A stretch of DNA of 64,000 bases from Saccharolobus islandicus REY15A (lineage in GTDB: Archaea > Thermoproteota > Thermoprotei_A > Sulfolobales > Sulfolobaceae): assembly GCF_000189555.1 (NCBI RefSeq), contig NC_017276.1. The stretch is one strand, 5' to 3'. Below, piece by piece: positions 4,395 through 36,639 of this stretch; position 1 is the first letter of the stretch, and each line of letters starts with the position of its first letter. A program made the position numbers and the translations under genes. The notes below the pieces were generated by a model that ran no database searches, was not told the origin of the DNA, and worked only from the letters and a program-made list of their open reading frames with translations.

Positions 4395-4514
4395 TTAAAG
4401 GGATCTAAAAAGCTTAAGGACAAGGAAAAGCTAGTCAAATCTTAGATTAGAGTCTTTGAAGAGTGGTTGTAGTGATTAAAAATGGTTATATAGATTATCT
4501 AAATAATCTCACAG

Positions 4515-6074
4515 TTATATATTCTCTAACTTAGTCAAAATGTTTTTGTAGATATTATTTTCTTCTATGTTTAAGTTAGACAGGATCTTAATTAGCTGAG
4601 TTAATTCTAGACTCTTAGATGCTGGAAGGGTTTTTATTAAATCCGGATTCTTTTTGACTCTAGTTAATAAGCCTAACACATTATTACTACGCTCGGTGAA
4701 CTTAATTTTCTTCTTACCACTTATCATATAAAGCGTTCTGAAGAATAGCTTACTTCTTCCGTAAAACTTACCTATTATGTAATATTTAGCTATTTTATCA
4801 CTAATATTACAATTTATCGAATTACATAAAACGTTCACTACTTCTTTAAACACTTCTTTTGTTATATCGCCATTAACACCAATTATTCTTTCATATTTAG
4901 AGAACTCCTTCATTACTACTTCAAGAGCTTCAGTGATAGCCTCAATGTCCCTTAAATTTCCAATTCTCTTCTCTTTCAGAATACTGTGAAGCTCATTAAG
5001 CGTGATAGTCCCAGTTTTACCCTCATCTAAAGATATTCTAAACCCTTTCCCCTCATAACGTATCGCTAGCACTTTGTATTTTGACTTTAGCAGAGCTCTT
5101 ATATCTTCTTCTCTTATAATTTTCAATAGGAATGTTTTCTTATTGCTTGTTATATCTTCAAAGCTTAACCTCTCCATACTTTTCTCTATAAATGAATTAC
5201 ACGCATTATCTAAGCAATTGAAGAAATGTTCAGCGTAAAGGTAAGGGGTTAATAATCCGTTTACTAAATTGCTCAAAGTTCTCTTTAAGAAGCTTAAATA
5301 GAAGTTGTATATTTCAGTTTGTAAATCGTAGTCTAATGAAGCTACGTAAACCCCTTCTTTTGCGTTAAGTACTGCCATCGCCGATTTTACGAAATATTCA
5401 CTAGGCAAAATTGCCCACTTCCAACTTATTCTTGGTTGTACTTTATAGAACATACTTTTAATTCCTTTCTTATTTATAACAGTAAACATAGAATTATAGG
5501 AAATATAATCTAAAAGTGCTAAAGATAGTATAGGCCTAATACTTTTATCGGTTTCTCTAATTTTATAAATTAACTTATTTATTACGTAAAGTTGTAATGG
5601 AGAGAAAAATTTGTAGACGGTGTTAAAACCGTAAACACTTACTCTAAAATTTACAGTTTCCCTAGGTATATCCTCTTCTAGAATTAGCTCGAAACTTTCG
5701 TCTGTAGGGATAACTGAGGAATTAAGTAGTTCTTTTTTGCTTATCTCAAAGTTCAAGTATTGTTCTAGTAATGAATTCCACTCCTTGAAGTTAATTTTCT
5801 TTATTACTGTATTACAGTGGAGGCATCTAATTACCTTATTTTCGTTTACCTCAAAAACTGTATCGCAATTAGGGCATCTAATCTTCCATTTTCCCATTTT
5901 AATCTCATCTAACACCCTTACTTCTTTTGAAATATTTCTCACACACGCTATGACGTCTTTAGGATTATAATTAGAATTAAGTATTTCATGAATTATCTTA
6001 GGTGGAATTGAGGGTCCTCGCCAGTAAGGTAGTATAGCGTTTATTAATCTCACTTCTTTTGCTCTAGTTTGCAT
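4515..6074 (-). CDS. Catalytically inactive paralogue of the DUF1156 methyltransferase
   Basis: Collinear blocks shared with 13762..16563 (WKIRCPNC/WEVKCPHC, EWNSLLEQYLNFEIS/DWNEKYEKYLNGEIS, YKFFSPLQL/YKLFSARQL, FYLSFLKR/FYYVWLKR, FSKYERIIG/FTQYEKILG); no DPFAG or DPPY motif. Confidence 0.8.
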   Translation of the reverse strand: MQTRAKEVRLINAILPYWRGPSIPPKIIHEILNSNYNPKDVIACVRNISKEVRVLDEIKMGKWKIRCPNCDTVFEVNENKVIRCLHCNTVIKKINFKEWNSLLEQYLNFEISKKELLNSSVIPTDESFELILEEDIPRETVNFRVSVYGFNTVYKFFSPLQLYVINKLIYKIRETDKSIRPILSLALLDYISYNSMFTVINKKGIKSMFYKVQPRISWKWAILPSEYFVKSAMAVLNAKEGVYVASLDYDLQTEIYNFYLSFLKRTLSNLVNGLLTPYLYAEHFFNCLDNACNSFIEKSMERLSFEDITSNKKTFLLKIIREEDIRALLKSKYKVLAIRYEGKGFRISLDEGKTGTITLNELHSILKEKRIGNLRDIEAITEALEVVMKEFSKYERIIGVNGDITKEVFKEVVNVLCNSINCNISDKIAKYYIIGKFYGRSKLFFRTLYMISGKKKIKFTERSNNVLGLLTRVKKNPDLIKTLPASKSLELTQLIKILSNLNIEENNIYKNILTKLENI

Positions 6075-6134
6075 AGAATAAAAGAGAAGTATTAGACACT
6101 CTCGGTATGACGATACTATTTTAAGTGTTAAATA

Positions 6135-7406
6135 TTACTGGAGATTCTGTATACAATTATAACCTAATTTGTTTATATATGCGCACATGGTTAGAGGTGT
6201 TTCTGTATGTATTGGGATTACCTTCTTAGGTTTAATGTAATCTAATATAGTCCTTAACTCATAGGGATAATAATGACCTGAAATCCTCAGTCTATAGGTT
6301 ATAAAGCCTAGAGCCTTATACCAATTATCCTCCACATTTTCGTCCTCACCGCTTTCAGCCTTACTCTCTGTAGATAATGAGATGACTACAGAGCCCTTAG
6401 TTATTTCGCTTAATCTCCTTCCAAAGTCTATTAGATTCCCCTTAACTGTAAATATAACGTAATCCTGCGGGGATCTAATTATCTCTTCTTCATCTACTGT
6501 CTCAAATTCCATGTTTTTATCATCAAATTGATAAGCTTTATCTATCAAATTGAACTTTGTTATCCAGAAGCTAGCCATTTTTATTAATCTGCGTCCGGAA
6601 AACACCGGAATTCTGCCCTTCTCTTTAGTAACTAGAAGAAGGTACGCGAGCTCTTCTAAGTCTATGGGATCTATAGAGACCGTGATGAGTGAGTTACTGT
6701 GAATTTCGAAGATATTATTAACTTGCTCATTAAAATAATGGGGCTGAAAAGGGGAGACGGCAGACGAGAAGTTTGTTCCCTCTATTATTAAAACGTCAGT
6801 ATCTAATCCCCTCTCCTCATATTCCTCCAGAAGAGTTTTTTCATGAATTCTATTGTGTAGCTCTTGATCTGCTACTTTTAGAGGAGATGAAAGTCTTAAG
6901 TCGCCAGTATATAATATTTTAACGTCCCCGTTGTTATAATAAAATGAATAAGCCGGGTAAGCGCTATGTTCAACTTGCAATGGTAACACACCATCTTGGT
7001 TATCTCTTATATCAATTACGTTAACACCTAGAGGCGGAGATATATATGTAGTCCAGTTATCAGATTCTTTGTATGGTTCTATGAATTGATTAAACGTATC
7101 TTTATCTGGTACATATAACATCGTACCTACATTTAATAAATGGAGAACCCCGAGGTGGTCTAGGTGTAAGTGGGATATATAAATCTTGTTATATTCATCA
7201 GATGGTGGTATGATCCCTAGCCTCCTTAATTCTTTGGCACTTGATGGTTGAATGTTAGCGTTATAATATTTTTTAAATCTTGAAAATCTTATCCCTTGGT
7301 CAAAGACCAATGTATTGTCCTTATTCTCTATAATGATAAAATTACCCCCAATTTCATTAAATCCTTGTTTAATTCTGATTAGAGTATTCCCGTATTTATA
7401 TTCCAT
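6135..7406 (-). CDS. Metallo-beta-lactamase fold nuclease, beta-CASP / RNase J-like
   Basis: VFDQG, HLHLDH (HxHxDH), EHSA, TGDLR, IEGT, SGH and PIH motifs all present. Confidence 0.85.
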   Translation of the reverse strand: MEYKYGNTLIRIKQGFNEIGGNFIIIENKDNTLVFDQGIRFSRFKKYYNANIQPSSAKELRRLGIIPPSDEYNKIYISHLHLDHLGVLHLLNVGTMLYVPDKDTFNQFIEPYKESDNWTTYISPPLGVNVIDIRDNQDGVLPLQVEHSAYPAYSFYYNNGDVKILYTGDLRLSSPLKVADQELHNRIHEKTLLEEYEERGLDTDVLIIEGTNFSSAVSPFQPHYFNEQVNNIFEIHSNSLITVSIDPIDLEELAYLLLVTKEKGRIPVFSGRRLIKMASFWITKFNLIDKAYQFDDKNMEFETVDEEEIIRSPQDYVIFTVKGNLIDFGRRLSEITKGSVVISLSTESKAESGEDENVEDNWYKALGFITYRLRISGHYYPYELRTILDYIKPKKVIPIHTETPLTMCAYINKLGYNCIQNLQ

Positions 7407-10092
7407 GTTTAATACCCACTAGTGCTCCATTTACGTAAGTGTAAATCCATTCGCCACCTTGTGCTTTCAGTAAATCTAGCGGGCTTACAATTTTTATGTA
7501 TCTAACCTCACCTTTTCCCTCAGCTCTTACTTTATCTCCTAAACTTATCTTCCATCCTTGCTCGCTAAGGGCTTTTATCACAATATCTTTAACGTCTTCA
7601 TTATGTCCTTTAATCCCTATTATCGCCCCTACTATTATTGGGTTAACCCTAAAGTCCTCCATACTATTTGGTACCCAATTATCCTTTCCTCTACCTTGTC
7701 TGTAAGATATAAACTGCTGTTCAACATGGTAAAGTTTTTGTTTTACGTAGTTTATCACATTACACATCCATAATTTATCTTTTACTAATACCTCCTCTGG
7801 GTAAATTGCATTACAGTGTAACAATTGAGGGAGGATAGTCTTAATGAAATCACTTTGACGGATTATATCACCTTTAGAGTTTATTATTATAGGGAGGTGT
7901 AGTAAGTTCTTATTAGACTTAGTCTCTATATTTATATCTACAAGATAAATGTTGTAGTCTAAACTATCACAAACTATGTAATTCTTACGTAATTTAACTA
8001 ATTTAGAAACTAAAGAGTAAAGTAATTGTGTGTCCTTGCCTATCCTATTATCGTCGTATGTTTCGAATAAAGAAAATTTCAGTATGACTATTTTTCCGTT
8101 AGAAAAAGTTCCACCTTGATATTTGACATATTGTTCTAAGTATGATTTAATTGCATCATTAAGCTCTTTCCTATTTTCAAATCCTAAGATCTGTCTAATA
8201 GATTCAATCTCGTTTATGATCGAACCTTGCATCTTCTCGAATAACGCGAATTTTTTCATAGAGTCTTTTAGTATTTTTATCCTCTTTAACATAGCGTCTA
8301 TTAAATTATCTAAATTTCCTTGTAACGCAGCTTCCCATACTTTAATTGGGGTAACCTTTTCTTTTTCATTATTAGGCTCATTATATAGTGTGTATATTGG
8401 TATAGTCTCCTTGTCCTCACTAAGATCAAATATCTTGCTCACACTAACTCCTTGGTATATTAAAGCGTCAACTACTTTCTCACTAGACCCGGTACCCTTA
8501 GTTATTGATAAAAGCTTATTATAATAATTTTCGAGTAAGGCTTGTTCTAGAGGGATCTTCAATGAAATGTAATATATGTATACGGGCTTGGTTTGTTTAA
8601 GTCTCCACACTCTTCCGTTTCTCTGTTCAAATCTAACGATGCTTAACGGAATTTCATAATGTATTATAACGTTAGCGCTCTGTAAATTTAACCCCTCCGA
8701 CGCAACGTCTGTTGCAACTAAAACTTTACTTTCTTTACTTTCCAACCATTTCTTAATCTGGTCTATCCCCTCTTGATTTACCGTTTCACTAGTTACTTTC
8801 TTAATTTCCTTGTCTGATAAATTAAGCTCACGTTTGAGCTTATCTAAAATATAGTTCGCAGTATCCTTATATTCCGTAAATACTATTACCTTATCTCCCC
8901 TATTCAAATGAGCTTTCACTAAATTTGTAAGTGCCTTTATTCTGCTATCGTTATTAATAACCCTTTTAGCGAATTCTATTAACTGAGGTATGTAATCTTT
9001 AAACCTTTCAAGATATGGAGCATTTATTTCAGCCAATTCTTTTGCTATGTCATCGGGTTCTATACTTTCCTCTGTCTCCTCCTCCTCAGCATATTCCTCA
9101 GCTTCATCTATAACCTCATTTTCGTTTACTACCGTACTCCTATTCTCTATTATGTGTTTAAAAGTTAATAAACCAGCAGAGGGGCTGGACAATGAACGTC
9201 TACCTATCATAAACGCTAAGAGCTGAAGAGCTTTAGGCTTCTCGCCTACACTATTATAATAATCTTTAAGTATACTTAGAGAAAGTTCCCTTATGATAGT
9301 GTAATATTTTTCCTCATCTTCCGTAGGTTCTACTACATACTGAATGAAGTATGCTTTGGGGAATATCTCTTCTTTTTCGTAAACCTTATTAACGTTATCT
9401 TTGTTCCTCTTTAATACTATAGCCCTAACAGTATTCCTTAATATCGTATCGCTATTGTCCCTTAAATAGGGGTCTATAAGGACCAATCTCTTTATATAAT
9501 CATTGTCATTACCCCTATGGGGTGTGGCTGATAGGCCGATAAAGTGAGAGTTTGGGTTTCTAGTTACTAATGAGGCTATAATTGTGTACCTCTGGTTTTC
9601 CTTATTACCTATTACTCCTACTTTATGTATTTCGTCAACTACAATCAAGTCCCAGTTAATAGATAAGAACTTAGACTTATGCTCATTCCTCTTAATAGTA
9701 TCCACACTGACTACATAAATCCCGTTCTCATCCAGCATATCCTTGTAATTTCTGTAGTCAATTATTGGTAATTGCCACTCTTTAGCAAATTTCCTCAATT
9801 CAGATATCCACTGGCTAATCAAGACTTTAGGCACTATTAAAAGAACCTTTTTAACCCCCCTATTCTTAATTAATTGATCCATTATCATTATACCCTCTAT
9901 AGTCTTTCCTAACCCTACATCATCAGCTATAAGAAACCTTACTGGATCCCTTGAGAGAAGTCTATAAAATATTTCAGCCTGGTGGATGTAAGGTTCGTAA
10001 TCCCCTCCAGTTAAAATAGGATATCTAAATATGGGATGAGATTCCTTTAGTCTATCTAGGTAGTAGCTGATAAACTCACTCATAGAGGTCAC
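7396..10092 (-). CDS. SNF2-family helicase with a degenerate C-terminal DUF3883-like domain
   Basis: ADDVGLGKT, VVDEIH, SATP, VATDVASEGLNLQ, EQRNGRVWR; C-terminus EQGWKI...GDKVRAEGKGEVRYIKIV. Confidence 0.9.
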   Translation of the reverse strand: MTSMSEFISYYLDRLKESHPIFRYPILTGGDYEPYIHQAEIFYRLLSRDPVRFLIADDVGLGKTIEGIMIMDQLIKNRGVKKVLLIVPKVLISQWISELRKFAKEWQLPIIDYRNYKDMLDENGIYVVSVDTIKRNEHKSKFLSINWDLIVVDEIHKVGVIGNKENQRYTIIASLVTRNPNSHFIGLSATPHRGNDNDYIKRLVLIDPYLRDNSDTILRNTVRAIVLKRNKDNVNKVYEKEEIFPKAYFIQYVVEPTEDEEKYYTIIRELSLSILKDYYNSVGEKPKALQLLAFMIGRRSLSSPSAGLLTFKHIIENRSTVVNENEVIDEAEEYAEEEETEESIEPDDIAKELAEINAPYLERFKDYIPQLIEFAKRVINNDSRIKALTNLVKAHLNRGDKVIVFTEYKDTANYILDKLKRELNLSDKEIKKVTSETVNQEGIDQIKKWLESKESKVLVATDVASEGLNLQSANVIIHYEIPLSIVRFEQRNGRVWRLKQTKPVYIYYISLKIPLEQALLENYYNKLLSITKGTGSSEKVVDALIYQGVSVSKIFDLSEDKETIPIYTLYNEPNNEKEKVTPIKVWEAALQGNLDNLIDAMLKRIKILKDSMKKFALFEKMQGSIINEIESIRQILGFENRKELNDAIKSYLEQYVKYQGGTFSNGKIVILKFSLFETYDDNRIGKDTQLLYSLVSKLVKLRKNYIVCDSLDYNIYLVDINIETKSNKNLLHLPIIINSKGDIIRQSDFIKTILPQLLHCNAIYPEEVLVKDKLWMCNVINYVKQKLYHVEQQFISYRQGRGKDNWVPNSMEDFRVNPIIVGAIIGIKGHNEDVKDIVIKALSEQGWKISLGDKVRAEGKGEVRYIKIVSPLDLLKAQGGEWIYTYVNGALVGIKHGI

Positions 10093-10471
10093 GAAAAGAT
10101 CTACTGACTCTGTAAGTATCTACTATATTATTTTTCCTTGAATATCTACTTAAAAATTCAGTATACCAAAACTGTAAGCTAAACTCGTCCATTCCTATTA
10201 TTGTCTTCCCTAGCTCATTAATCCTCTTTGCATAAACTTTCCTAATGGCTTGTCTCACACCACCATAAACTATCATAATTTTAAACAGTCTTTCGTTCTC
10301 AGTCCTTATAGTTTTTTTAGTCCTCTTATATTCCAAATTAACGTTCTTGAGAATAATATCATAAATTTCACTTAAGCTCACATTAGCCTTAAACACTCGT
10401 GAGCTATTACTGTCTCTTACGATGTAATAATAAATCCTATTAGAGACAGTTTCTCTTATGAGATACTCCAC
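10076..10471 (-). CDS. Small protein of the DUF499 operon (positional and possibly structural counterpart of DUF3780)
   Basis: Coupled between the DUF499 and helicase genes; C-terminal MDEFSLQFWY...RSFRDLY. Confidence 0.55.
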   Translation of the reverse strand: MEYLIRETVSNRIYYYIVRDSNSSRVFKANVSLSEIYDIILKNVNLEYKRTKKTIRTENERLFKIMIVYGGVRQAIRKVYAKRINELGKTIIGMDEFSLQFWYTEFLSRYSRKNNIVDTYRVSRSFRDLYE

Positions 10472-10472
10472 C

Positions 10473-13400
10473 TTAACACACCTTAACTCTTACTTTTATA
10501 ATCCCCTTATTAATCAACTCGTTAATTTCCTCGACTTTATTTATACCCTTAATTTCCTCGACTTTTATCCTAAGCGAGCCAGAAATTTTAGGCTTTAAAC
10601 CTAACAAGCTTAATATGGGATTTATGAAATTAATGAAATCGAGAATATTAGACCCTGAAGGTCTAACACTTACTGAGATCTTCTTATTAGGGTCTTCTAC
10701 GTTGATTTCACCTGCCAAGCCTTTTTTACCGATTACTGATGAGTTTAACTTCATAATCACAGTCTTTATATCACTCATATCTATTATATCGATTTCGGAA
10801 ATCCTTGAATCTCTATTAACTTGATCTACAACCTTCTCACACTCACTCTGCCTTAACCTAGTGACTATCTCAACCCTCTTCTCCTTATTATCATATCTTG
10901 CACTTACAATAGTTATACCGTCTTGATTTAACGTAATCTTCAGAGTAGTCTGGAAATCTGGGATTCCTTCTTTTACGTCTAATTCTCCATAGCTACTATT
11001 TAAGTATACCTTAGAGTTGAAATTACCTACTTTCTTCACCATTATTTTAACTTCCTTTATTTCACCCGGTAATCCTTCTATCTCTTTAGGTTCAGCATAT
11101 AACTCTATACCGGTCTCTAGAGTTTCCTCAACGAGTTTAATCTCTCCTGCATTAAATTTAACAAACCAATTTTCATCTTCTTTAAGTTCTCTTAAAGGTA
11201 CTCTTGTACCATCGGGTAATTCTAATACATAATACCTCTTGATTACTTTATCATCTTCCTCTATGGTTTTCTCTTGCGAGACTAATTCGTTAATCTCTTT
11301 ATCTGCAGCTTCATTAGCCGGTAAGATTATTGAAGATTCATCAACTACTATTTCTCCCATACTTTCATATTTCTTATAATAAACTTTCCCCTTAGTCATA
11401 ACGCCTATTTCTAACTTCTCCACACCGTTGCGTATAGCGTTATAAATTGCAGAATCAGTAACAAAAGGTAAAGAAGGATTAGTGTAAAATATCTCCCTTA
11501 AGTCCTTAACAGAAAATGACTTCTTAGTTATATCAATTCCTAAGTTACTTAATAACGTTACTAATACATCGAAATCGAAATTTTCTTCACGATATATTTT
11601 ACCCTCATCAATTAACGTGCTTTCGACTTGCTGGAGCAACGTCTTTTCTCCACTTTTTAATTCTACTATTCTAACCTCGTTATTCCCAATGGGGTAGGCT
11701 ACTTTATCAAAATATTGAAATATTTGATTATATATGGCATTCTCTAAGCTATTTAAATATTCACGTAATATTTTCCCCGCATATTCTCTTGAGATTTTAT
11801 CATTATAATAAGGTGTTACATCGATATTGGAGCAGGAAATATGCTTCCTCATATAATCTTCTATTTTATCCCTATTAGACCCTGTGGATGAAAATAGTAA
11901 CGTTATAGTATTAGAATATCTTCTCAAGCCTTCTGTCTTCCCAGAAGGTACATAATATAATATTCTCCTCGCAACTTCTTCAGAAGCTTTAAATATCTCG
12001 TTGACATCCTTACAATCTTGGCACAGCGGCTTACTTAATATTACAACGTAATACGACGGTTCATCGACGTTAACTAATTCATTTTTATTTCTGAGTATAG
12101 TTCTGTATAATTTTAGTAAAAGCCCGCTGATAGTTTTTTTACCCTTCTTTTGCACATTGTCTATCGGAGTTTCGGCTAATTCGAGCATAATATTATCTAA
12201 CCTATCCTCTACCTCAGCTTGCGGTACCTTACTAGCGTCTTTTTCACATATGGTTTTAGGGTCTAAGAAATAAGTAACCCAATATCTTCCCTTATCATTC
12301 ATAATATATGGAATAATCATGTCAACGTTCTTCGAATTACTACTAATGCTCCCTAAAATCTCCTTTACATCGGATGGGAGCCTACCTATTAAGTTGAGGT
12401 ATTCTGGATCAAGCACTGAAGTAATTATTTCCTTATCATCAGGTAATGCAGAAGCGAGTTGACCCGCGTCTAACCCTAACTGGTGATAGTATGTTGTGAT
12501 AAATATGTAATTAGCTAATAAGAATACTATTTCCAATCCCTTAGACCTCTGAATAATTGTATCTGCAACTGTACCGTAATTCTTGAAATCCTTCAGTAGT
12601 AAATCGTGTATCTGAGGATTTTTTATACTTAAGTCCGATGGTAAAATTAAACTCCTTGTAGGTTTAGAGTTCCATAAGTCCCTTATTACATACCTAGTTA
12701 TCTTTATACCTTCACGAGTACCTTGAAGGTGAGTGTTCCCTTCTAATAACTTCTTTAATGTCTCAATATAAAGTGGATGAAAAGGATAAGTCCTCACAAC
12801 ATCTTGGGCTATAGCAACGTTAACGTAGTCTTTATACTGATCAGTTAACTTCTGATATTTACCTACTACATTACTCTTAACAGTCTCATTTACTTCCTTG
12901 AATATTCTCTTTATTAATACATTAGCTAAATCTGTAGAGGTCTCTATAGGTGCCCTAAATGCTTTACCGCTCCTTTCTAACCTTTTAGCTAATGCCTTTA
13001 TAACCTCAGGCTCATACTCCGACTCAATATACTCTATAATATCTTGTTTATTAGAAGAAGTAGTAATTTTAGCTGGAATTGTAGCTACTAACACTACTGG
13101 CAAATTAACGCCCATTGATGCTAAAGCTTCGAGAAATAGTAAACATTGCTCATAATACTCTTTATATCTGTACTTTAATCTTAAAAGGTAATAAGCTATC
13201 TCATCTAACAAGATAAGAACTTTTTCCCCTTTAAACAAATTCTCAAGATCATCTTTCTGCGGAGCTATCATATCCTCGTCTAATTTCCTAACTATTTCAT
13301 ATTTTCCAAGTTTTTTGGCAATATAACCCCATAAGGTCTTTATTTCAACGTTATCCTCCTTTAAAGGATTTACCGGTGATGGTGCAGTTCTACTATCCTT

Positions 13401-13769
13401 ACCCCCTATACCTATTACTTTAACACCTTCTAAAACGTTAAGCCCGTATTCCTTCACTAGTTTTGGATTATTGAAAGTGTGATACAGTAAGAGTAAAGTA
13501 TGTGTTTTACCGCCTCCGAATAAGGAATATATCGTTATAGTAATCCCTTTACCTTGGCTCAAGGCATTTGTTATCTCGTTGACTAAAATCCTCATGGAGT
13601 CAGTTATATACGTAACAGAGAAGAATTCTTTAGGGTCTAAATAAATTTGTGGTGCATTCCCAACTATAACATCACTGAGTTCAGGAGCCATTTGATCATC
13701 CAGGCTTGGATTAAATACGTCATCTCTAACCTTGTTCTCATAAATTAAGTTAGAAATTGGGTTAGCCAT
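10473..13769 (-). CDS. DUF499-family AAA+ ATPase
   Basis: FGGGKTHTL Walker A, ILLDEI Walker B, YPFHP and TREGIKI motifs; typical neighbour of DUF1156 genes. Confidence 0.85.
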   Translation of the reverse strand: MANPISNLIYENKVRDDVFNPSLDDQMAPELSDVIVGNAPQIYLDPKEFFSVTYITDSMRILVNEITNALSQGKGITITIYSLFGGGKTHTLLLLYHTFNNPKLVKEYGLNVLEGVKVIGIGGKDSRTAPSPVNPLKEDNVEIKTLWGYIAKKLGKYEIVRKLDEDMIAPQKDDLENLFKGEKVLILLDEIAYYLLRLKYRYKEYYEQCLLFLEALASMGVNLPVVLVATIPAKITTSSNKQDIIEYIESEYEPEVIKALAKRLERSGKAFRAPIETSTDLANVLIKRIFKEVNETVKSNVVGKYQKLTDQYKDYVNVAIAQDVVRTYPFHPLYIETLKKLLEGNTHLQGTREGIKITRYVIRDLWNSKPTRSLILPSDLSIKNPQIHDLLLKDFKNYGTVADTIIQRSKGLEIVFLLANYIFITTYYHQLGLDAGQLASALPDDKEIITSVLDPEYLNLIGRLPSDVKEILGSISSNSKNVDMIIPYIMNDKGRYWVTYFLDPKTICEKDASKVPQAEVEDRLDNIMLELAETPIDNVQKKGKKTISGLLLKLYRTILRNKNELVNVDEPSYYVVILSKPLCQDCKDVNEIFKASEEVARRILYYVPSGKTEGLRRYSNTITLLFSSTGSNRDKIEDYMRKHISCSNIDVTPYYNDKISREYAGKILREYLNSLENAIYNQIFQYFDKVAYPIGNNEVRIVELKSGEKTLLQQVESTLIDEGKIYREENFDFDVLVTLLSNLGIDITKKSFSVKDLREIFYTNPSLPFVTDSAIYNAIRNGVEKLEIGVMTKGKVYYKKYESMGEIVVDESSIILPANEAADKEINELVSQEKTIEEDDKVIKRYYVLELPDGTRVPLRELKEDENWFVKFNAGEIKLVEETLETGIELYAEPKEIEGLPGEIKEVKIMVKKVGNFNSKVYLNSSYGELDVKEGIPDFQTTLKITLNQDGITIVSARYDNKEKRVEIVTRLRQSECEKVVDQVNRDSRISEIDIIDMSDIKTVIMKLNSSVIGKKGLAGEINVEDPNKKISVSVRPSGSNILDFINFINPILSLLGLKPKISGSLRIKVEEIKGINKVEEINELINKGIIKVRVKVC

Positions 13770-16563
13770 TTAACCACCTCTCTATGCCTAATTTATCTCC
13801 AGACAAACGTTTAGAGGGTTCCTTCTCTATATCTTTATCTGGTAACACCCTCGCAAAAATCTTTGCCATAGCTAAAGCCTCGTCTACGAAACGAGTCCTT
13901 TCTCTGAGCTTCTCAATTTCGTCCTTAAGCTTATCGGAATGCTTCAAGGAGACATATTCAAGGTAGTGGAACACTTGAACGGGATTAGAGAAGTTGTAAT
14001 TCCCTTGAAGGGCCATTTTTACATCTGGAAGCTGTTCTAATGCACTAATTGCGTCATCGCCTTGATTAGGTTCTACTAATGCTATTGCGCCTTTTGCGTC
14101 CGTAACTCTAATAATTCCTTTGTACTGTAGATCTTGAATATCTAAACTTCCAGATGAGATATTTAGAAACACCATGCTATTATTATCTAACATCCTCACT
14201 CCCTTATTAGGCGGTGGAATTAGAAGCTTTACTAAAACATAGTAAACTGCGTAAGGATCTGAAATCCTCACTCCCATTCCCTTAGATAACCCTTCGATTA
14301 ATGCTTGTGCAGTTGTTGGAAACACATAGTTCTTGATTAAGTCTTCAACTGCATTTAACCCTTCCCCTCTTAAGCCTAAAATTTTTTCATACTGGGTAAA
14401 CACACTAAGGACTTTCCCTAAAACCTCTATGTAAGTATCAATGGAGAGTTTAAGTTTCTGATTGCTTAGCATGTTTGATACCCATTCCGACACTTTAGAA
14501 ATAGCTTCTTTTCTAACCTCTTGAATTAACTTAGTACCTTCTGCCCTCTTTCTCCATACTATGACTATAGATTTATCTAAGGAAATAACAGTAGACATTG
14601 CTGTTAATCTTGTCTCATCTTCTGTCGTTATTGCATGGGTGGCAGTTATTCTGAACTTTGAAACATACCAGCCCGCATAGATTAGAGATATCCACGCGTC
14701 TGGTGATGTATGGTTATAGAAAGTCACCAGTATTCCGTTTTCTTTTAAAAAGTCAGCGAGCTTTTCGAATGCTTGTGCGAGCTTATCTCGGAAATATTCA
14801 TAAGTACCGACATTATCTCCAAATACCTTTTCTCTTCCTTCACTGACTCCTATATCTTTAGGCACTAGTTCCTCCCATTGGGTACTATAAGGAAATGGGA
14901 TTATTCTTTTTAACCATACATAATAGAAATCACTTAATTCTGGATAAGCAACATCATCTGCATATGGCGGATCAGTAATGATAACGTCTACTTTTTCGTT
15001 TAAAGTCAATTCATTGACATCACTATTCATTATCTCGATCTTAGAGCCACTGTTAGTCTGTATTAAATATTCTAGTCCTTCTATTACATGATCTAAACTC
15101 CTAGATAAGGAACCTATTATATCAGCCAAAGGAGATATTTCTACCCTGTTCCATGCAAATGCGATACCTCTAAAGGCTAGAGCGGAAGCAACAAATTTTC
15201 TGGTAGACTCAACTGACGTTAAGAAGCAATTATGTCTTATATGATTTAGAAGGGCTATAGTTAGATATGTTATTATTGCCTCTTTATATTCCTCATCTCC
15301 TTTTATCTTTTCCCTAAGCTCGTTCAGTTTAGTAATAATTTTAGAGAATATTATCAACTGCCTTGCACTAAATAATTTATAGAACTTGTCCCCGCCCCAC
15401 GTAAAAGTTGTAATATCTCTTGTTATATTAGGCACTCTTTCTGTAGGTATATTTGTAATATCGATATCCCTTAATTTTTCAAAACTATTCCAGAACTTCT
15501 CCGTGTCTTCTTTATTAATTTCTTCAAACTCCAGATCCTTTCCTCCTCCCTTGAATTTAACTAAGAGTGCTGGTCTCGCTTTGGCGTTTTGCAGTTCTTC
15601 TATACTAATTTCTCCATTTAGGTATTTCTCGTATTTCTCGTTCCAATCCCTTATCGCCTCCTTAACATACCACTTGTCTCCCTTACCGGGCAAAACGCTA
15701 TTGCAGAATAAGCATTTAGCATAACTATTTCTCGCTCTAACATTCCCCTCTGGGACGCGGTATTCCTTGCCGTCAACTATTAATTTGTCCTTAGTCTTTT
15801 TCGCAGATATACTCTTCCTATTAAGTTCTTTATTTAGGTCAATAACCTTTATTCTTAATTGCTTACCATTAACTTCTGGATTCATGAAAACCAGTCTTTT
15901 AAAACTACCAGATTTGACTTCCCCTTCACTCTCTTCCTCCTCTTCCTCATCACTACTTCCTTTTAATTCTAATAGCCACCACTTGTAGACTAAAGGAGTA
16001 TAATTTCCGCAGTGTGGACACTTTACCTCCCATGTACCTACAAAACCAGTATAATCGCCATATAATTCTTTAACATCATCTTCCAGACTTTTTATTAGCT
16101 CTTCACCGTATTTCTTAACGTCTTCAATTAACTTTACTCCATATTTAGGATACTCAAGAACAGCCTTTAAAAACGCATATGCTGTAGGCAATAACTCAGA
16201 GGCAATAACTTTACCAACTTTTAACCTTTTCGCCTCGAGCGGAATTGAACCAAACCCAGCAAAAGGGTCTAAAAGTGTAAAGTTTTTAAATTCGTCATTT
16301 ACTATGGGTTGAGATTTATGTGGGAGATGTTCTGATAGTCTAATGATCATCTTGAACTTATCAAGTGGGTAATTTTCTGGGAGTAATGCTGCAGCAGTAA
16401 ATGCCCTTGCTGAAATTAAAGGTTTTCTAGTCCACCAGAATATCATTTCCCAATAGACCGGTCTACCTGGGCCCTTTTCCTTTTCAGCTTTTTTATCTAT
16501 TTCCGGTACTATATCTCCAAAAGCATCACTTTCGATTAACCGCCTTTCTATATTTTGAGACAT
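13762..16563 (-). CDS. DUF1156 adenine-specific DNA methyltransferase with Zn ribbon
   Basis: FWWTRKPLISAR N-terminus, motif I DPFAGFGSIP, motif IV TDPPY, CPHC and CLFC knuckles. Confidence 0.9.
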   Translation of the reverse strand: MSQNIERRLIESDAFGDIVPEIDKKAEKEKGPGRPVYWEMIFWWTRKPLISARAFTAAALLPENYPLDKFKMIIRLSEHLPHKSQPIVNDEFKNFTLLDPFAGFGSIPLEAKRLKVGKVIASELLPTAYAFLKAVLEYPKYGVKLIEDVKKYGEELIKSLEDDVKELYGDYTGFVGTWEVKCPHCGNYTPLVYKWWLLELKGSSDEEEEEESEGEVKSGSFKRLVFMNPEVNGKQLRIKVIDLNKELNRKSISAKKTKDKLIVDGKEYRVPEGNVRARNSYAKCLFCNSVLPGKGDKWYVKEAIRDWNEKYEKYLNGEISIEELQNAKARPALLVKFKGGGKDLEFEEINKEDTEKFWNSFEKLRDIDITNIPTERVPNITRDITTFTWGGDKFYKLFSARQLIIFSKIITKLNELREKIKGDEEYKEAIITYLTIALLNHIRHNCFLTSVESTRKFVASALAFRGIAFAWNRVEISPLADIIGSLSRSLDHVIEGLEYLIQTNSGSKIEIMNSDVNELTLNEKVDVIITDPPYADDVAYPELSDFYYVWLKRIIPFPYSTQWEELVPKDIGVSEGREKVFGDNVGTYEYFRDKLAQAFEKLADFLKENGILVTFYNHTSPDAWISLIYAGWYVSKFRITATHAITTEDETRLTAMSTVISLDKSIVIVWRKRAEGTKLIQEVRKEAISKVSEWVSNMLSNQKLKLSIDTYIEVLGKVLSVFTQYEKILGLRGEGLNAVEDLIKNYVFPTTAQALIEGLSKGMGVRISDPYAVYYVLVKLLIPPPNKGVRMLDNNSMVFLNISSGSLDIQDLQYKGIIRVTDAKGAIALVEPNQGDDAISALEQLPDVKMALQGNYNFSNPVQVFHYLEYVSLKHSDKLKDEIEKLRERTRFVDEALAMAKIFARVLPDKDIEKEPSKRLSGDKLGIERWLNG

Positions 16564-16659: not shown

Positions 16660-16955
16660 AGTCTGACCTCCTTTTAGTCAAGTCTATGCAATACAGATCT
16701 TAATAGGGTGTAGGCTTTTGACCTCACTGAGTGTAAAACCGGTCAAGGAGCTTAGCCTCATCTAGCCGGAAGTTGGGCTTAAAGCCTGAATAAGTAAATT
16801 TGGAGGCCCCGGTTGCTGGAATAGATGTATCAAGAGCAAGCTAGTAGTGTATTTTCAAGCCAAATTTTATGAGTTTACTAATAATAGGCAAGAGTTTGAG
16901 GGGATAAGAAAGATTTTACCTAAGGGTTGTAAAAGTGTATCGAGAGTGTCGCCAT
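16660..16955 (+). mobile_element. Degraded 5' fragment of an IS110-family element (ISC1190-like)
   Basis: From 16800: LEAPVAGIDVSR, frameshift, KLVVYFQAKFYEFTNNRQEFEGIRKILPKGCK, the IS110 GIDVS RuvC-like start. Left boundary approximate. Confidence 0.7.
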
Positions 16956-17025: not shown

Positions 17026-17226
17026 TTAACTCTTTTTCATTTTTTCTAGTTTACTTCTTATTTCACTTATTAGAATCTGAATATTCTCTTTTGCTATTTC
17101 ATCACTCCTAAAAGGACTTAGCACTGTTTCCTTATCTGGTCCATTATATTGGTAATCATGGATAGCTAAAGCTAATTTTGTTACTAGGTTTACGTCTTTT
17201 CCTAAAATTAACGATAATTCCTCCAT
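17026..17226 (-). pseudogene. PaREP1-family C-terminal fragment
   Basis: LAIHDYQYNGPD motif; only 66 aa. Confidence 0.5.
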
Positions 17227-17303
17227 GTAGGATGTTGGAGCTAACTAATATGTTTTATATACGTCAGGTAGATAATAATATTAGGAAGGATTCAAAATAT
17301 ATC

Positions 17304-17774
17304 ATGATGGAGGAGCTAATAAAGAAGGCTGAGGAGAAAGGGATAAACGTTGAGGATTTAATAATTTCAGCTTTATCTAGAGAAGACCCTCAAGAAGGAA
17401 TAAAACTTAGATTGACTTTAGCTGAAAAGTACATGAAAGAGGCTGAAGAATACCTAACTAAAGGTGACGTAGTTCAATCTTCAGAAAAAGCTTATAAGGT
17501 AGCTGAGGAGATAGTCAAGGCCTTTGCTGAGAAGTTTAATTTAGCTGAATATCAGCAGGCAGTAAAGGAAGATAGGTGGCATACTTACACTTTAGCAAAT
17601 GCTGCAGCAAAACTTTCCTCAAGATTAGGTGATTGGATTAAAACTGGGTGGAATTCGGCTTATACACTTCACGTATGGGGATTTCATGAAGCTAAGTTAG
17701 ATATGGATAGTGTAAAAAACTTATTACAAGACATTAAAAGAATGCTAGAAGAAAGTAAAAAGATATTATCTTAG
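17304..17774 (+). CDS. PaREP1-family protein
   Basis: GDVVQSSEKAYKVAEE and LHVWGFHE motifs. Start moved to ATG 17304 by comparison with the paralogue at 33694. Confidence 0.85.
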   Translation: MMEELIKKAEEKGINVEDLIISALSREDPQEGIKLRLTLAEKYMKEAEEYLTKGDVVQSSEKAYKVAEEIVKAFAEKFNLAEYQQAVKEDRWHTYTLANAAAKLSSRLGDWIKTGWNSAYTLHVWGFHEAKLDMDSVKNLLQDIKRMLEESKKILS

Positions 17775-18000: not shown

Positions 18001-18945
18001 TTAGCTTAATATCTTTCTTAACGCTAACTTGCAAAGACTCATAAGGGTGTTATATCCTATTTTTTCATACTTAGAAAACCTATATCGCAAATCGTTTTTA
18101 ATCTCATTTTTAATAAAATCAATAATACTTCTCTTGACTATACTACCCTCTAAAATAGCCGTTAGCATCTCTTTTCTTTTAGTATTAGCAATATCGAATC
18201 CTAAGCTTATCTTATCCACCTTACCCATTGCAACATAATCGCTTATGTTATCAAGGAAATTATCTAAAGCTTCATCTGGAATTAAGATAGGAGATAATGC
18301 TAAGTAATATTCTTCTTCAATACTTGTATCCACTTTATAATCATCAACTTCAAGCTTAGCTATTCTATTTTCTCCTCCAAAATTCACTATTTTACCGTTT
18401 ATTTTATCACTTATCGCATCATTATCTATGAATATCACGTAATTAACCTCCTTCTTAAATGCTAAATATCTAGCTGAGTAAAGGTAATGTTCTTTAACAG
18501 TTCTGGTACTTTTATCTATACTTATTCCTATCCTATCTTGATGATTTATGATCTGGAATAGTTTATTTTTATCATAAAAAAGTTCATAAATCCCCTTCTC
18601 CCGTCGTTCGTACTCTTTTTCTAGCAAAGTGGGTAGATTTATAAGGTGTTGTTGGTCTACTAAAGCTAAATGATTGCCCATTCTGAGAGGAAATAAATAC
18701 TCTCCATTAGTCTCTATGAAAGTTCCATAAATAGTAGCTAGTAAATTCGTTAAGTCCGATAACCAGTCCCCAGTCCCAGAACTCTTGTTAAATAATATAT
18801 AACCTAACATTCCGGCAATTGTAGAAGGCCTTGGTATTATTAAAGACTGTGCTGCAGTATGGGAACCGGTAATTAAGGGCTCAAATTCCCCCTGGCTTCT
18901 AAACATTAACGGTTCTAACGGTTTTATTAACACTCTCTTCATCAC
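18001..18945 (-). CDS. cmr3: Type III-B CRISPR subunit Cmr3
   Basis: IKPLEPLMFR, PRPSTIAG, RIGISID...KEHYLYS, FGGENR; directly after cas10. Confidence 0.92.
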   Translation of the reverse strand: MMKRVLIKPLEPLMFRSQGEFEPLITGSHTAAQSLIIPRPSTIAGMLGYILFNKSSGTGDWLSDLTNLLATIYGTFIETNGEYLFPLRMGNHLALVDQQHLINLPTLLEKEYERREKGIYELFYDKNKLFQIINHQDRIGISIDKSTRTVKEHYLYSARYLAFKKEVNYVIFIDNDAISDKINGKIVNFGGENRIAKLEVDDYKVDTSIEEEYYLALSPILIPDEALDNFLDNISDYVAMGKVDKISLGFDIANTKRKEMLTAILEGSIVKRSIIDFIKNEIKNDLRYRFSKYEKIGYNTLMSLCKLALRKILS

Positions 18946-33693: not shown

Positions 33694-34164
33694 ATGGAGG
33701 ATCTGATTAAGAAGGCTGAAGAGTACGATATTGACATTAACGACCTCATAATTGACGCCATTTCAAGGAAAGATCCTAAGGAGGCGATTAACTTAAGAAT
33801 AGAATTAGCGAAGAAGTACATTGCGGAAGCGGAGGACTATTTGAAGAAAGGTGACGCTGTACAAGCTTCAGAGAAAGCTTATAAAACTGCTGAAGAGATC
33901 GTTAAGGCCTTAGCGGAGAAGTTCAATATTCCAGAATATCAGCAAGCATCGAAAGAAGGAAGGTGGTATACTTATTGGTTAGCTTCCGCAGTTAATAGAT
34001 TAGCTAAGGATTTAGGGGATTGGATTTTAAATGGTTGGAATTCTGCTTATATTCTTCACGTATGGGGTTTTCATGAAGTAAAACTTTCAACTTCAGATAT
34101 TACTGAGTACTTAAGAAAAGTTAAGGAAATGTTAGATAACGTGATAAAGGTATTGGAGAAATAG
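33694..34164 (+). CDS. PaREP1-family protein
   Basis: GDAVQASEKAYKTAEE and LHVWGFHE; paralogue of 17304..17774. Confidence 0.88.
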   Translation: MEDLIKKAEEYDIDINDLIIDAISRKDPKEAINLRIELAKKYIAEAEDYLKKGDAVQASEKAYKTAEEIVKALAEKFNIPEYQQASKEGRWYTYWLASAVNRLAKDLGDWILNGWNSAYILHVWGFHEVKLSTSDITEYLRKVKEMLDNVIKVLEK

Positions 34165-34748: not shown

Positions 34749-34960
34749 TCTCAGTCTTTTCCGGAAAAGTGAACTACCACGCCCTAACGGACGTGGCTTC
34801 CTGCTTCACAGCCGAGGCTTGCCAAAGGTAGAGGTCTCAGCTCCACAGGCACTAAGGGTCGTTCCGACCCCGATCTACTCAGAATATTAAGAGAAGCATT
34901 ATAATCACGGTCTACAGTCCAACCGCAGGAAGGACAGACAAACACACGATCAGCCAAAGC
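34749..34960 (-). ncRNA. Predicted TnpB omega/reRNA (scaffold plus flank-derived guide)
   Basis: Known TnpB architecture: right-end scaffold ending TTCAC, guide from the flank (TTTTCCGGAAAAGACTGAGA). The 5' boundary is an estimate. Confidence 0.55.
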
Positions 34961-36087
34961 CAAGTCCTTCTTAACGTAACCGCACCTAGCACAAATCATT
35001 GAAGTAAAAGCAGGATTAACAAAACGAATCTCCTTACCATACTTCCCAACTTGATACTCCATAATACTCCTAAACTCATGAAAAGCAACATCGTGCAACC
35101 TCATCCTCAGCCTTCTGAGAGACTTACCAACAATTTGCTTAACATGAATATCCTCCATTACGAGAACATCATAATGCTCAGCAAAATACTTCCCCAGTTT
35201 CATGTACATATCCATCCTCAAGTTCTTCAAGTGCTCATAAGCCCTTGCAAGCTTAACCTTTGCCTTAAACCAGTTGTGTGACAAGAACTTCTTCCTTGAA
35301 AGAGCTTTATGAAGTCTCTTCATCTTGTTGAGCGCCTTCTCGTAAGGCCTCATGTTTGGCACGTATTCCCCATCAGAGGTAGTGAGAAGTTTCTCTACAC
35401 CAACGTCCACAGCAACAACTTTGTTTGTCTTGGGGAGTTGAGGATACTCTTGATCCACAACGAAAGTGATGTACAATCTGCTTGAAGGTGCCAGCTTGAC
35501 TACTACCCTCTCCACTTTTTCCAGTTGGAAATCCCTATGAACAACGACGTTGAAGATACCTAGGTTTGAAAGCTGAAGCGTCATTACCTTCTTCTTGTTC
35601 TTCTTGCTTTTCGTCCTTATTTCTCTCACCTTCATGACTTTCCAACCTGACTGAGGGTAGACTAGTGAGTACCACTTGTGTGCTTTCTTTTCCTTGGGGA
35701 AGTGTGCTAACCCTTCGAAGAACCTCTGTCTAGCGTCGTAGAATCTGTCTGCGATCTGTTGTAGTGTTTGGGAATATAGATGTTGATATTGTTTATCCTG
35801 TTTTCTTAGATCGAGAGCTAGTTGTCTCAACTCCGTCTTAGTGAGTCCTTTTCCGTCTCTCTCATGAAAATAGATGTCTGCCCAACGTAGGGTGTTGTAC
35901 ACTTCACACGCTAACCTCAATTGGGCTTTTAACGCCCTCAATGTTTGTTCGTCAGCGTAAGCTCTAAAGCGTAACCCTACGTCAGACATTAATAGAATAT
36001 TTGAAAAAGAATTATTTAAATATAAGGGGGCTATCCATCCACTCCCTCACGGAAGGGGTCTTTCGCCCCTTTGAACCCCTTGTTAAG
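34769..36087 (-). mobile_element. IS200/IS605-family tnpB-only element (ISC1316-like, 1319 bp)
   Basis: Right end TTCAC at 34769-34773; left-end hairpin AAGGGG-CGAAAG-ACCCCTT; preceded by TTTAT (36092-36088); no tnpA. Confidence 0.85.
34784..35989 (-). CDS. tnpB: TnpB RNA-guided endonuclease
   Basis: RuvC-I VAVDVG, RuvC-II VMEDI, CARC/CPSC Zn finger, Ruv[13 protein letters not shown]; all catalytic residues intact. Confidence 0.95.
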
Positions 36088-36372: not shown

Positions 36373-36639
36373 ATGGGAAGAACACAGCCATCATACACCA
36401 TGGCAGTTAATAGAGAGTTAGAAAAGCTTGAAAGAATTATAGAGCGCTTACATTCTCCCACATTATCTCTTTTACTAGAAAGAGTTAAGGAAAAAGTAAG
36501 GTATACTCAAAGTGCATCCTATGACGAACTCATTGATCCCTATAACCTTGTTTACTTTACGCTAATTTGGGCTTTGGCGGAGGAATGCGAGAAATGGAGG
36601 AGTACGTACTTGACGCTTATCCGGTCAAAGGAGGAGTGA
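36373..36639 (+). CDS. Small PolB2-associated protein
   Basis: MGRTQPS N-terminus; first gene of the conserved PolB2 operon. Confidence 0.75.
   Translation: MGRTQPSYTMAVNRELEKLERIIERLHSPTLSLLLERVKEKVRYTQSASYDELIDPYNLVYFTLIWALAEECEKWRSTYLTLIRSKEE

Follow-up and report, generated by a model that had tools for sequence, protein, structure and literature searches.

A DUF499-centred defence-type cassette with a coupled β-CASP nuclease and a predicted pseudo-methylase in Saccharolobus islandicus REY15A

Six genes and the kinship of their core

In a 64-kb stretch of the genome of Saccharolobus islandicus REY15A (the window, by which we mean the whole of that stretch), six open reading frames (ORFs) fill the region 4515-16563, all of them co-oriented on the minus strand: a DNA methyltransferase, a DUF499 ATPase, a small protein, an SNF2-family translocase, a β-CASP nuclease and a truncated relative of the methyltransferase. 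A preliminary description of this DNA had seen in them a six-gene defence operon with its first five genes packed together, and the ORFs and their junctions agree with that packing and with the shared orientation. What sort of system is this, and which of its parts would do the cutting? We number the six genes g1-g6 in cassette order; they and the two short features beside them are as follows.

g1, 13762..16563, minus strand: 933 amino acids (aa), DUF1156-type N6-adenine DNA methyltransferase, motifs intact
g2, 10473..13769, minus strand: 1098 aa, DUF499 STAND/ORC-like AAA+ ATPase
g3, 10076..10471, minus strand: 131 aa, small conserved α+β protein between ATPase and helicase
g4, 7396..10092, minus strand: 898 aa, SNF2-family translocase with a C-terminal PD-(D/E)XK (NOV_C) remnant, predicted dead
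g5, 6135..7406, minus strand: 423 aa, RNase J-like metallo-β-lactamase (MBL)/β-CASP nuclease with a complete active site
g5-g6 spacer, 6075..6134, minus strand: 60 nt, possible separate g6 promoter
g6, 4515..6074, minus strand: 519 aa, truncated and predicted non-catalytic paralogue of the DUF1156 methylase ("pseudo-methylase")
Downstream border of the horizontally shared block, 4486..4514, minus strand: end of nucleotide homology to Sulfurisphaera ohwakuensis

The packing is close: g1 and g2 overlap by 8 nt, a 1-nt gap parts g2 from g3, g3 and g4 overlap by 17 nt, and the start of g5 lies over the stop of g4 in an 11-nt overlap, after which comes the 60-nt gap before g6. A TATA-like CTTAAAAAAG stands 24-33 nt 5' of the g1 ATG and may serve as its promoter, and the spacer sequence holds another, ACTTAAAATAG, about 43-50 nt 5' of the g6 ATG. 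It is possible, then, that g6 has a promoter of its own in the spacer, which would fit the convergent g6-like genes found elsewhere. (A scan for sigma-70 promoters and terminators gave counts equal to the shuffled expectation and is not applicable to archaea; an Rfam scan of the window gave zero matches.)

The methylase g1 matches DUF1156 (1.5e-7), UPF0020 and MethyltransfD12 in Pfam and MTase_II (2.3e-132), HmaB (2.3e-41) and DUF1156_MTase (1.5e-25) in PADLOC. Motif I (DPFAG, 99-103) and motif IV (DPPY, 531-534), which the preliminary description had taken as the marks of an active enzyme, are present and are invariant in six orthologues from four archaeal lineages; a Zn-ribbon/target-recognition-domain (TRD) insert occupies about 175-500 between them, and there is a C-terminal helical region. 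We found no methylome assignment for this methylase in the literature. The ATPase g2 matches Pfam DUF499 at 1e-125 over residues 113-1094, HmaC (6.2e-39) and DUF499 (7e-16) in PADLOC, and DUF499_antiphage in NCBIfam (5.7e-24, under the curated cut-off), and its translation shows a Walker A GGGKTH and a Walker B LLDE.

The small g3 has no match in Pfam, PADLOC or NCBIfam. We tried it as a DUF3780 protein, and no model in the three collections matched it, even at E ≤ 1 for four orthologues; where it sits and the topology predicted for it do fit what has been published on DUF3780, to which it may yet belong. Its AlphaFold 2 (AF2) model (predicted local distance difference test, pLDDT, 89; predicted template-modelling score, pTM, 0.86) has four β-strands and five helices, and compared with the Protein Data Bank (PDB) it gave no fold match at E ≤ 0.001, leaving the fold unassigned. 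A hidden Markov model of the Sulfolobales g3 proteins detects equally placed 147-aa ORFs in cassettes of Desulfurococcales (6e-15) and Methanomethylicota (7e-13), and g3 is a conserved core component of the cassette.

The NCBIfam "anti-phage-associated" models for DUF1156, DUF499 and the phospholipase-D helicase match the core, all under their equivalog cut-offs, and in PADLOC the core fits the Hma models better than the DUF1156_MTase, DUF499 and PLD_Helicase models. Systems centred on DUF499 have been unified as "BREX-related" (BR) by Rakesh and Krishnan (PMC12839542). To judge by its profile matches, the core belongs among the DUF1156/DUF499/SNF2 restriction-like defence systems (Hma, Gao_RL, BREX-related); the preliminary description had placed it there, and the HmaA/B/C, DUF1156_MTase/DUF499 and NCBIfam models bear it out.

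The helicase, the β-CASP nuclease and the pseudo-methylase

The helicase g4 matches SNF2-rel_dom, ResIII and Helicase_C in Pfam and DrmD, BrxHI/II and HmaA (5.5e-50) in PADLOC, and it also matches RapA (1.3e-42). Positions 1-102 of the HmaA profile find no match in it; the helicase core begins near residue 30, about 30 residues precede motif I, and the protein has neither a Tudor nor an HKD domain at its N-terminus. The PLD_Helicase and phospholipD_antiphage profiles cover only the helicase core. At its other end, g4 has no NOV_C match in Pfam, whereas relatives outside Sulfolobales match at about 1e-20. An alignment of the C-termini shows the EHYDI...D segment deleted in six of six Sulfolobales helicases and IEVKG replaced in all six by IKIVS, VEIVR, VKIVS or VEVVA (in g4, ExK has become KIV), with the flanking strands still recognisable; the four aligned relatives from outside Sulfolobales all keep the E...EHYDI...D...IEVKG residues. 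These losses argue that the helicase-fused PD-(D/E)XK nuclease is catalytically dead, and dead in Sulfolobales only, which upholds what had been claimed for the window.

The next gene, g5, would be another matter. It matches Lactamase_B and, weakly, RMMBL in Pfam and the RNase J family TIGR00649 in NCBIfam (9e-10), and its D36, HxHxDH (79-84), H147, D169, E209, H378 and H400 (that is, MBL motifs 1-4 and β-CASP motifs A-C) are invariant in 35 diverse homologues. Among solved structures, the uncharacterised EF2904 (2az4, 6e-26) and an archaeal RNase J (5ws2, 1.6e-22) come nearest to it, whereas for Artemis and Apollo the alignment covers the MBL part alone. From these residues, g5 appears to be the only intact nuclease of the window cassette. 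At least 289 members of its family are detectable, each about 405-450 aa long, and they come from Sulfolobales, Thermofilaceae, Desulfurococcales, Korarchaeota, Bathyarchaeia, Methanomethylicia and Baldrarchaeia. A GTDB scan with g5-derived peptide patterns, which are generic for RNase J, yielded about six useful loci among the matches listed, the rest being bacterial RNase J, and viral contigs scanned with the g5 pattern gave no match.

In every Sulfolobales cassette with sequence at that place, a g5 homologue comes directly after the SNF2 gene, often overlapping it: in the window, in S. ohwakuensis (L001, the L-numbers being our labels for the homologous loci compared with the window), in S. 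shibatae (L075) and Sulfolobus sp. E11-6 (L076), and in metagenome lineages (L003-6/L082, L007, L080, L081, L083/85/87 and L088/89). The same holds at seven loci from outside Sulfolobales, namely those of Methanomethylicota (L008), Bathyarchaeia (L009), Desulfurococcales (L010), Thermoprotei (L014), Korarchaeum (L077), Methanomethylicaceae (L078) and Baldrarchaeia (L079), and the DUF499 gene (and the DUF1156 gene) lies upstream wherever the contig extends far enough. These loci show g5 to be no local insertion but a partner of the helicase, conserved in at least five further archaeal lineages. The preliminary description had been right about the MBL nuclease, whose active site is intact, and wrong to see in the gene an insertion tied to the dead nuclease: the β-CASP partner is present where the helicase nuclease is intact, which implies two nucleases ancestrally, one of them lost later in Sulfolobales.

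Does such an enzyme attack DNA at all? An alternative that we hold to be possible, if rather doubtful, keeps the system and changes its output: the β-CASP protein would be a ribonuclease degrading the transcripts of the invader, the host or both, as a backup or abortive-infection effector, and would take the role of the HEPN RNase that is fused to many DUF499 ATPases, making the Sulfolobales version, its DNA nickase being dead, purely RNA-targeting and methylation-gated. The likeness of g5 to RNase J in NCBIfam and the PDB speaks for this, as does the weak match to RMMBL, an "RNA specificity" domain, and so does the invariant His400 of motif C, a signature of RNA-acting β-CASP members, although that Val/His rule is not absolute and no strict determinant (PMC2211804), and an archaeal RNase J cuts single-stranded DNA as well as RNA, with RNA preferred (PMC10470531). 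Outside Sulfolobales, g5 coexists with an intact DNA nuclease, in parallel to the pairs of restriction endonuclease (REase) and HEPN that type-1 BR systems include (PMC12839542), but an active DNA methylase kept under selection leads one to expect a threat to DNA.

There remains g6, for which a Zn ribbon is the sole match in Pfam, PADLOC and NCBIfam. Compared directly with the methylase, it proves to be kin: BLASTP aligns g6 79-200 with g1 279-451 (E = 7e-12) and g6 377-437 with g1 708-780 (E = 2e-4), and hhalign joins the two families with a probability of 99.8% (E = 6.6e-30, g6 80-433 against g1 282-780). Missing from g6 are the DUF1156 domain, motif I and motif IV, with no counterpart of DPPY (in the clade B described below, a degenerate DPFAF or DPFSF is all that remains of motif I). 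Retained are the CxxC...CxxC Zn ribbon (C67, C70, C84 and C87), the TRD-insert scaffold and part of the C-terminal helical region, the four cysteines and the scaffold being the best-conserved parts, and the g1 segment ELSDFYYVWLKR persists as EIYNFYLSFLKR. When 1.84 billion representative proteins were searched exhaustively with HMMER, only 3-4 g6-family clusters came to light; the next-best matches were mostly of 930-1050 aa, and five of those checked were DUF1156 methylases. BLASTP, hhalign and HMMER together thus portray g6 as a truncated, presumably catalytically dead paralogue of the system's methylase, the non-catalytic copy of the preliminary description.

At least eight Sulfolobales species or strains have a member of the family, and in each it adjoins the cassette: S. 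islandicus, Sulfurisphaera ohwakuensis, Acidianus infernus, A. hospitalis, Stygiolobus spp., Sulfolobus sp. S-194, Sulfolobus sp. E11-6 and S. shibatae. One of the family's clusters, to which UniRef gives the name S. islandicus, is 100% identical to the window g6. Wherever the sequence of a Sulfolobales locus continues downstream of g5, the gene that follows belongs to the g6 family. In clade A, it is co-oriented and 53-100% identical to the window g6; in clade B (L075 of S. shibatae, L076 of Sulfolobus sp. E11-6 and the metagenome contigs L088 and L089), it is convergent and 31-42% identical, and being convergent, it cannot be an obligate member of one transcript. The locus is best described as five coupled genes and one tightly linked gene, with no strict six-gene operon: the linkage of all six that had been proposed stands, and the operon does not, given the convergence in clade B and the 60-nt gap here. 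We considered inversion of g6 through flanking inverted repeats and rejected it, there being only 14-16-nt pairs at chance level inside the gene.

Beyond Sulfolobales, tblastn with three divergent g6 queries matched only methylase genes, and the non-Sulfolobales cassettes with downstream sequence (L010, L077 and L078) have no g6-like gene. The neighbourhood check that the preliminary description had proposed therefore finds both distal genes co-occurring with the DUF499 core in other genomes, g6 in Sulfolobales only. In the small sample examined, the presence of g6 and a dead helicase nuclease coincide perfectly.

Is g6 simply a decaying duplicate, or an unrelated neighbour without a role in the system? 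We find this extremely improbable. A gene with no catalytic motifs, a Pfam domain limited to the Zn ribbon and a poor structure prediction might well be suspected of decay, but comparison with S. ohwakuensis gives it a ratio of nonsynonymous to synonymous change (dN/dS) of 0.15, and comparison with a metagenome lineage one of 0.07, where g2-g4 have 0.13-0.17 and g5 has 0.08, and g6 is under purifying selection like the other cassette genes. That selection, the intact adjacent ORFs (found in several genera, down to 31-36% identity) and membership of a horizontally shared block all disfavour the idea. It is easier to imagine g6 as a regulator, although we think that unlikely too: it might inhibit the methylase or the restriction complex, or compete with either, as a safety catch of the antitoxin kind, or else be a Zn-ribbon/helix-turn-helix (HTH) transcription factor controlling the cassette. 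One source does label a family member "Zn-ribbon and HTH transcriptional regulator," and g6 shares homology with the methylase's C-terminal helical region, but its best-conserved part is the TRD-insert scaffold and not that C-terminus, and 450-520 aa is large for a regulator. The separate control suggested by its own 60-nt spacer and by its convergence in some genomes has to be set against its distribution: it appears only alongside a dead helicase nuclease, and this suggests a place in the restriction arm.

Transfer, decay and neighbours

The cassette has travelled. Nucleotide identity to Sulfurisphaera ohwakuensis, which belongs to another genus, is 85.6% over 11.6 kb, from 16083 (the edge of the locus compared) to 4486; on the g6 side, the homology ceases 29 nt past the stop codon, and the flanks differ. 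Synonymous divergence (dS) of the shared cassette genes is just 0.4-0.55. The six genes moved between genera as one block. There are also decay variants of the cassette: L086 (5826-8909) is a deletion derivative, 98.6% identical to L083, in which the end of the DUF499 gene is fused to g6 at about codon 35, with g3, g4, g5 and most of g2 gone and a 512-aa g6-like ORF left. The methylase is split into 299 and 607 aa in Sulfolobus sp. E11-6 (L076, 918-3664) and into 613 and 424 aa in Korarchaeum (L077, 615-3657), and the DUF499 protein into 469 and 688 aa in a Desulfurococcales metagenome-assembled genome (MAG; L010, 3084-6505); frameshifts, pseudogenes or faulty assembly could account for these split ORFs. 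Defence genes typically show patchy distribution, transfer and decay of this kind.

Partnerships of SNF2 proteins with β-CASP nucleases exist in repair and in RNA decay (CSB with SNM1A, Ski2 with aRNase J). The second of these pairs, aRNase J and a Ski2-like helicase, comes up in PMC10470531. Could the cassette then be no immune system at all, but a module for DNA repair, chromatin remodelling or RNA processing built from an SNF2 motor and a β-CASP nuclease? The precedent and the RapA match of g4 are what one would point to; tight linkage to a DNA methylase and to a DUF499 ATPase matching anti-phage models, the patchy distribution, the block transfer between genera, the decay variants (L086 and L076) and the adjoining Cmr genes and insertion-sequence (IS) elements all point the other way, and we judge such a module very improbable.

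Those Cmr genes bear out the preliminary description, which had placed a type III-B module beside the cassette; Cmr2, Cmr3, RAMP proteins and Cmr7 lie at 18001-26194. The Cmr7 gene matches Pfam Cmr7A (1.6e-33), and Cmr7 is known as a subunit specific to Sulfolobales. Tandem-repeat and Rfam scans found no CRISPR array in the 64-kb window. Two PaREP1/PaREP8 (HEPN-like) genes lie at 17026-17774, between the cassette and the Cmr module, and at 33694-34164; on the minus strand, a 66-aa ORF (17026-17226) runs over the start of the first and may encode a small partner. The stretch to the right of the Cmr module is a variable, IS-rich region and includes the following.

26638-27711: IS110-family transposase
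34784-35989: TnpB/OrfB_IS605 gene
36567-38252: family-B DNA-polymerase-like gene, 561 aa
39855-41855: ResIII/Helicase_C helicase, 666 aa

Several smaller observations belong here. A non-coding segment of about 270 nt, 5' of g1 (16674-16947), is 72.6% identical to L001 17128-17423, which lies about 5.5 kb downstream of the cassette in S. ohwakuensis; it may be a repeat near the cassette borders derived from a miniature inverted-repeat transposable element or an IS. A 39-nt tandem repeat at 2645-2739 (2.4 copies, 80% match) lies within an ABC-2 membrane protein gene and is probably trivial. In S. shibatae (L075, 1-617), a second, divergently encoded DUF1156 methylase gene (914 aa) stands directly upstream of the cassette methylase and may be part of a second system or a duplicate. 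At L011, the g5 homologue adjoins a 204-aa ORF and a PF01637 archaeal ATPase. In Korarchaeum (L077, 11504-18509), a convergent gene for a 1609-aa DEAD/YjiV_N/MZB helicase is followed by a 731-aa gene, and the pair looks like another defence-type module, which would put the cassette in a defence island there too.

A proposed working and its known relatives

We have tried to join these pieces into one account, and the joint best explanation, in which we place somewhat more belief than doubt, is that the window holds the Sulfolobales derivative of an archaeal subtype of the DUF499 systems, working in the way set out here. Its homology to Hma and Gao_RL, together with its genomic setting, makes it likely that the cassette protects against viruses or plasmids. 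Its likely function is a methylation-gated defence in which the β-CASP nuclease would be the sole effector and the pseudo-methylase would act as a non-catalytic reader of DNA.

The ancestral archaeal cassette would have had five genes: the DUF1156 methylase, the DUF499 ATPase, the small α+β protein, an SNF2-PD-(D/E)XK helicase and the coupled β-CASP nuclease. In that form, the helicase nickase might have made an entry point for a 5'-3' β-CASP exonuclease, or the two nucleases might have formed a dual-effector pair for DNA and RNA, like the REase and HEPN of type-1 BR. In Sulfolobales, the fused nuclease would then have decayed to a dead stump, and the truncated, dead methylase paralogue g6 would have been added beside the cassette. 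As its motifs suggest, g1 would methylate adenine in a host motif and mark host DNA; the DUF499 ATPase, with g3, would assemble on DNA and sense unmodified sites as an ATP-dependent platform, by analogy with BrxC and Hma. Given its Zn-ribbon/TRD scaffold, g6 could serve the restriction complex as a DNA reader that is unable to protect its target, while the SNF2 motor would translocate on DNA and deliver or activate the β-CASP nuclease. The nuclease, whose active site and gene coupling are plain to see, would cut the invader's single-stranded or nicked nucleic acid.

Several things weigh against this account, and they should be met together. Defence, methylation, complex formation and nuclease substrate are all things that we infer for this archaeal subtype, and the gene-context sample is modest, at about 17 independent loci. 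One locus, L011 (3074-4826, in a Desulfurococcales MAG), carries a g5 homologue without an SNF2 gene upstream; the protein is 45% identical to that of L010, its N-terminus appears disrupted, and it is the sole exception to the helicase linkage. An RNase J-type g5 with a His in motif C (H400) and an archaeal RNase J that prefers RNA mean that DNA may not be the target. Stoichiometric co-expression of g6 is not guaranteed, g6 being convergent in one clade. The reader role gains nothing from the AF2 model of g6, built on an alignment of six sequences and poor (pLDDT 50, pTM 0.36): too poor to assess the geometry of DNA binding or to take into a fold search.

There is a bolder possibility, to which we would give little credence but which deserves to be put into words: a system that reads DNA and cuts RNA. 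Here, g6 would read unmethylated invader DNA, the SNF2 motor, which resembles RapA, would carry the RNase J-like β-CASP enzyme along that DNA, and there this enzyme would break down nascent transcripts or R-loops, or knock RNA polymerase off in the manner of a torpedo, with no cleavage of DNA. If true, it would couple methylation-gated discrimination of self from non-self to interference at the level of RNA or transcription.

On the account that we prefer, of a methylation-gated Sulfolobales derivative with a β-CASP effector, why should the cassette matter? The DUF499/Hma/BR systems are widespread, their effector step is poorly understood, and to them is now added a β-CASP nuclease as a conserved, coupled partner across archaeal phyla, an effector class absent from the current BR classification and from PADLOC. 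The Sulfolobales form would be a natural experiment, in which "write" (methylate) and a putative "read" (restrict) are split between paralogues and the β-CASP enzyme is left as the only possible nuclease. Genetic work is feasible in Saccharolobus islandicus and its relatives, whose viruses and shuttle plasmids are well studied, and the mechanism is directly testable. Our literature search found no paper tying DUF499 to β-CASP/MBL nucleases or to Sulfolobales, and neither an MBL/β-CASP nuclease nor an inactive methylase paralogue is mentioned in the main and supplementary text of PMC12839542; an archaeal Hma/BR-type subtype with a coupled β-CASP nuclease and a small protein is undescribed in the literature that we searched.

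Where, then, does it stand among known systems? In the broadest terms, it recalls type I and type III restriction-modification, with methylation as self-marking, an ATP-driven translocase and a nuclease dependent on a methylase-type DNA reader, a conceptual likeness from which it would depart in that the putative restriction reader is a separate dead methylase paralogue and not the methylase or HsdS. Over its full length, the g5 protein can be aligned with EF2904 (2az4) and archaeal RNase J (5ws2), all catalytic motifs included, but forms a separate family embedded in defence cassettes and covered by no PADLOC model.

Among the BR systems, type 3 is marked by the addition of PglZ and of an inactive STAND protein, and its helicase lacks a nuclease (PMC12839542); with it and with type-3 BREX (BrxC, BrxXI, BrxHII and PglZ), the cassette shares the ATPase-methylase-SNF2 triad, the BrxHI/BrxHII matches of g4 and a helicase without an active nuclease, whereas the six cassette proteins have no match to PglZ (Pfam, PADLOC) or BrxB (PADLOC). 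Type 2 adds DUF3780 and has an N-terminal HKD nuclease in place of Tudor (PMC12839542). Gao_RL/type-2 BR shares with the cassette DUF499, a DUF1156 methylase, a standalone small protein between ATPase and helicase and the lack of a Tudor domain; it differs in that g4 has no HKD/PLD domain, g3 matches no DUF3780 model, and the effector is a β-CASP protein, from a superfamily absent among the BR effectors listed in PMC12839542.

Type 1 has three genes, its helicase bearing an N-terminal Tudor domain and a C-terminal active REase (PMC12839542), and Liu et al. (PMC11232893) report of Hma that its defence against T4 cannot do without the PD-(D/E)XK nickase of HmaA. The DUF499 ATPase, the DUF1156 methylase with its TRD insert and the SNF2 core are all present in the cassette, and the helicases of its relatives outside Sulfolobales bear the same C-terminal PD-(D/E)XK nuclease. 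The cassette differs by an extra small protein between ATPase and helicase, by a helicase without the N-terminal Tudor domain, by the translationally coupled β-CASP nuclease and the pseudo-methylase, and by the apparent death of the HmaA-type nuclease. The preliminary description had likened the whole to the bacterial system of DUF499, DUF3780, DUF1156 and helicase; the broad family is indeed the same, and g3 could not be shown by its sequence to be DUF3780. By profile scores and by the helicase architecture of its relatives, the system appears to stand closer to Hma/type-1 BR than to the PLD-helicase Gao_RL/type-2 BR.

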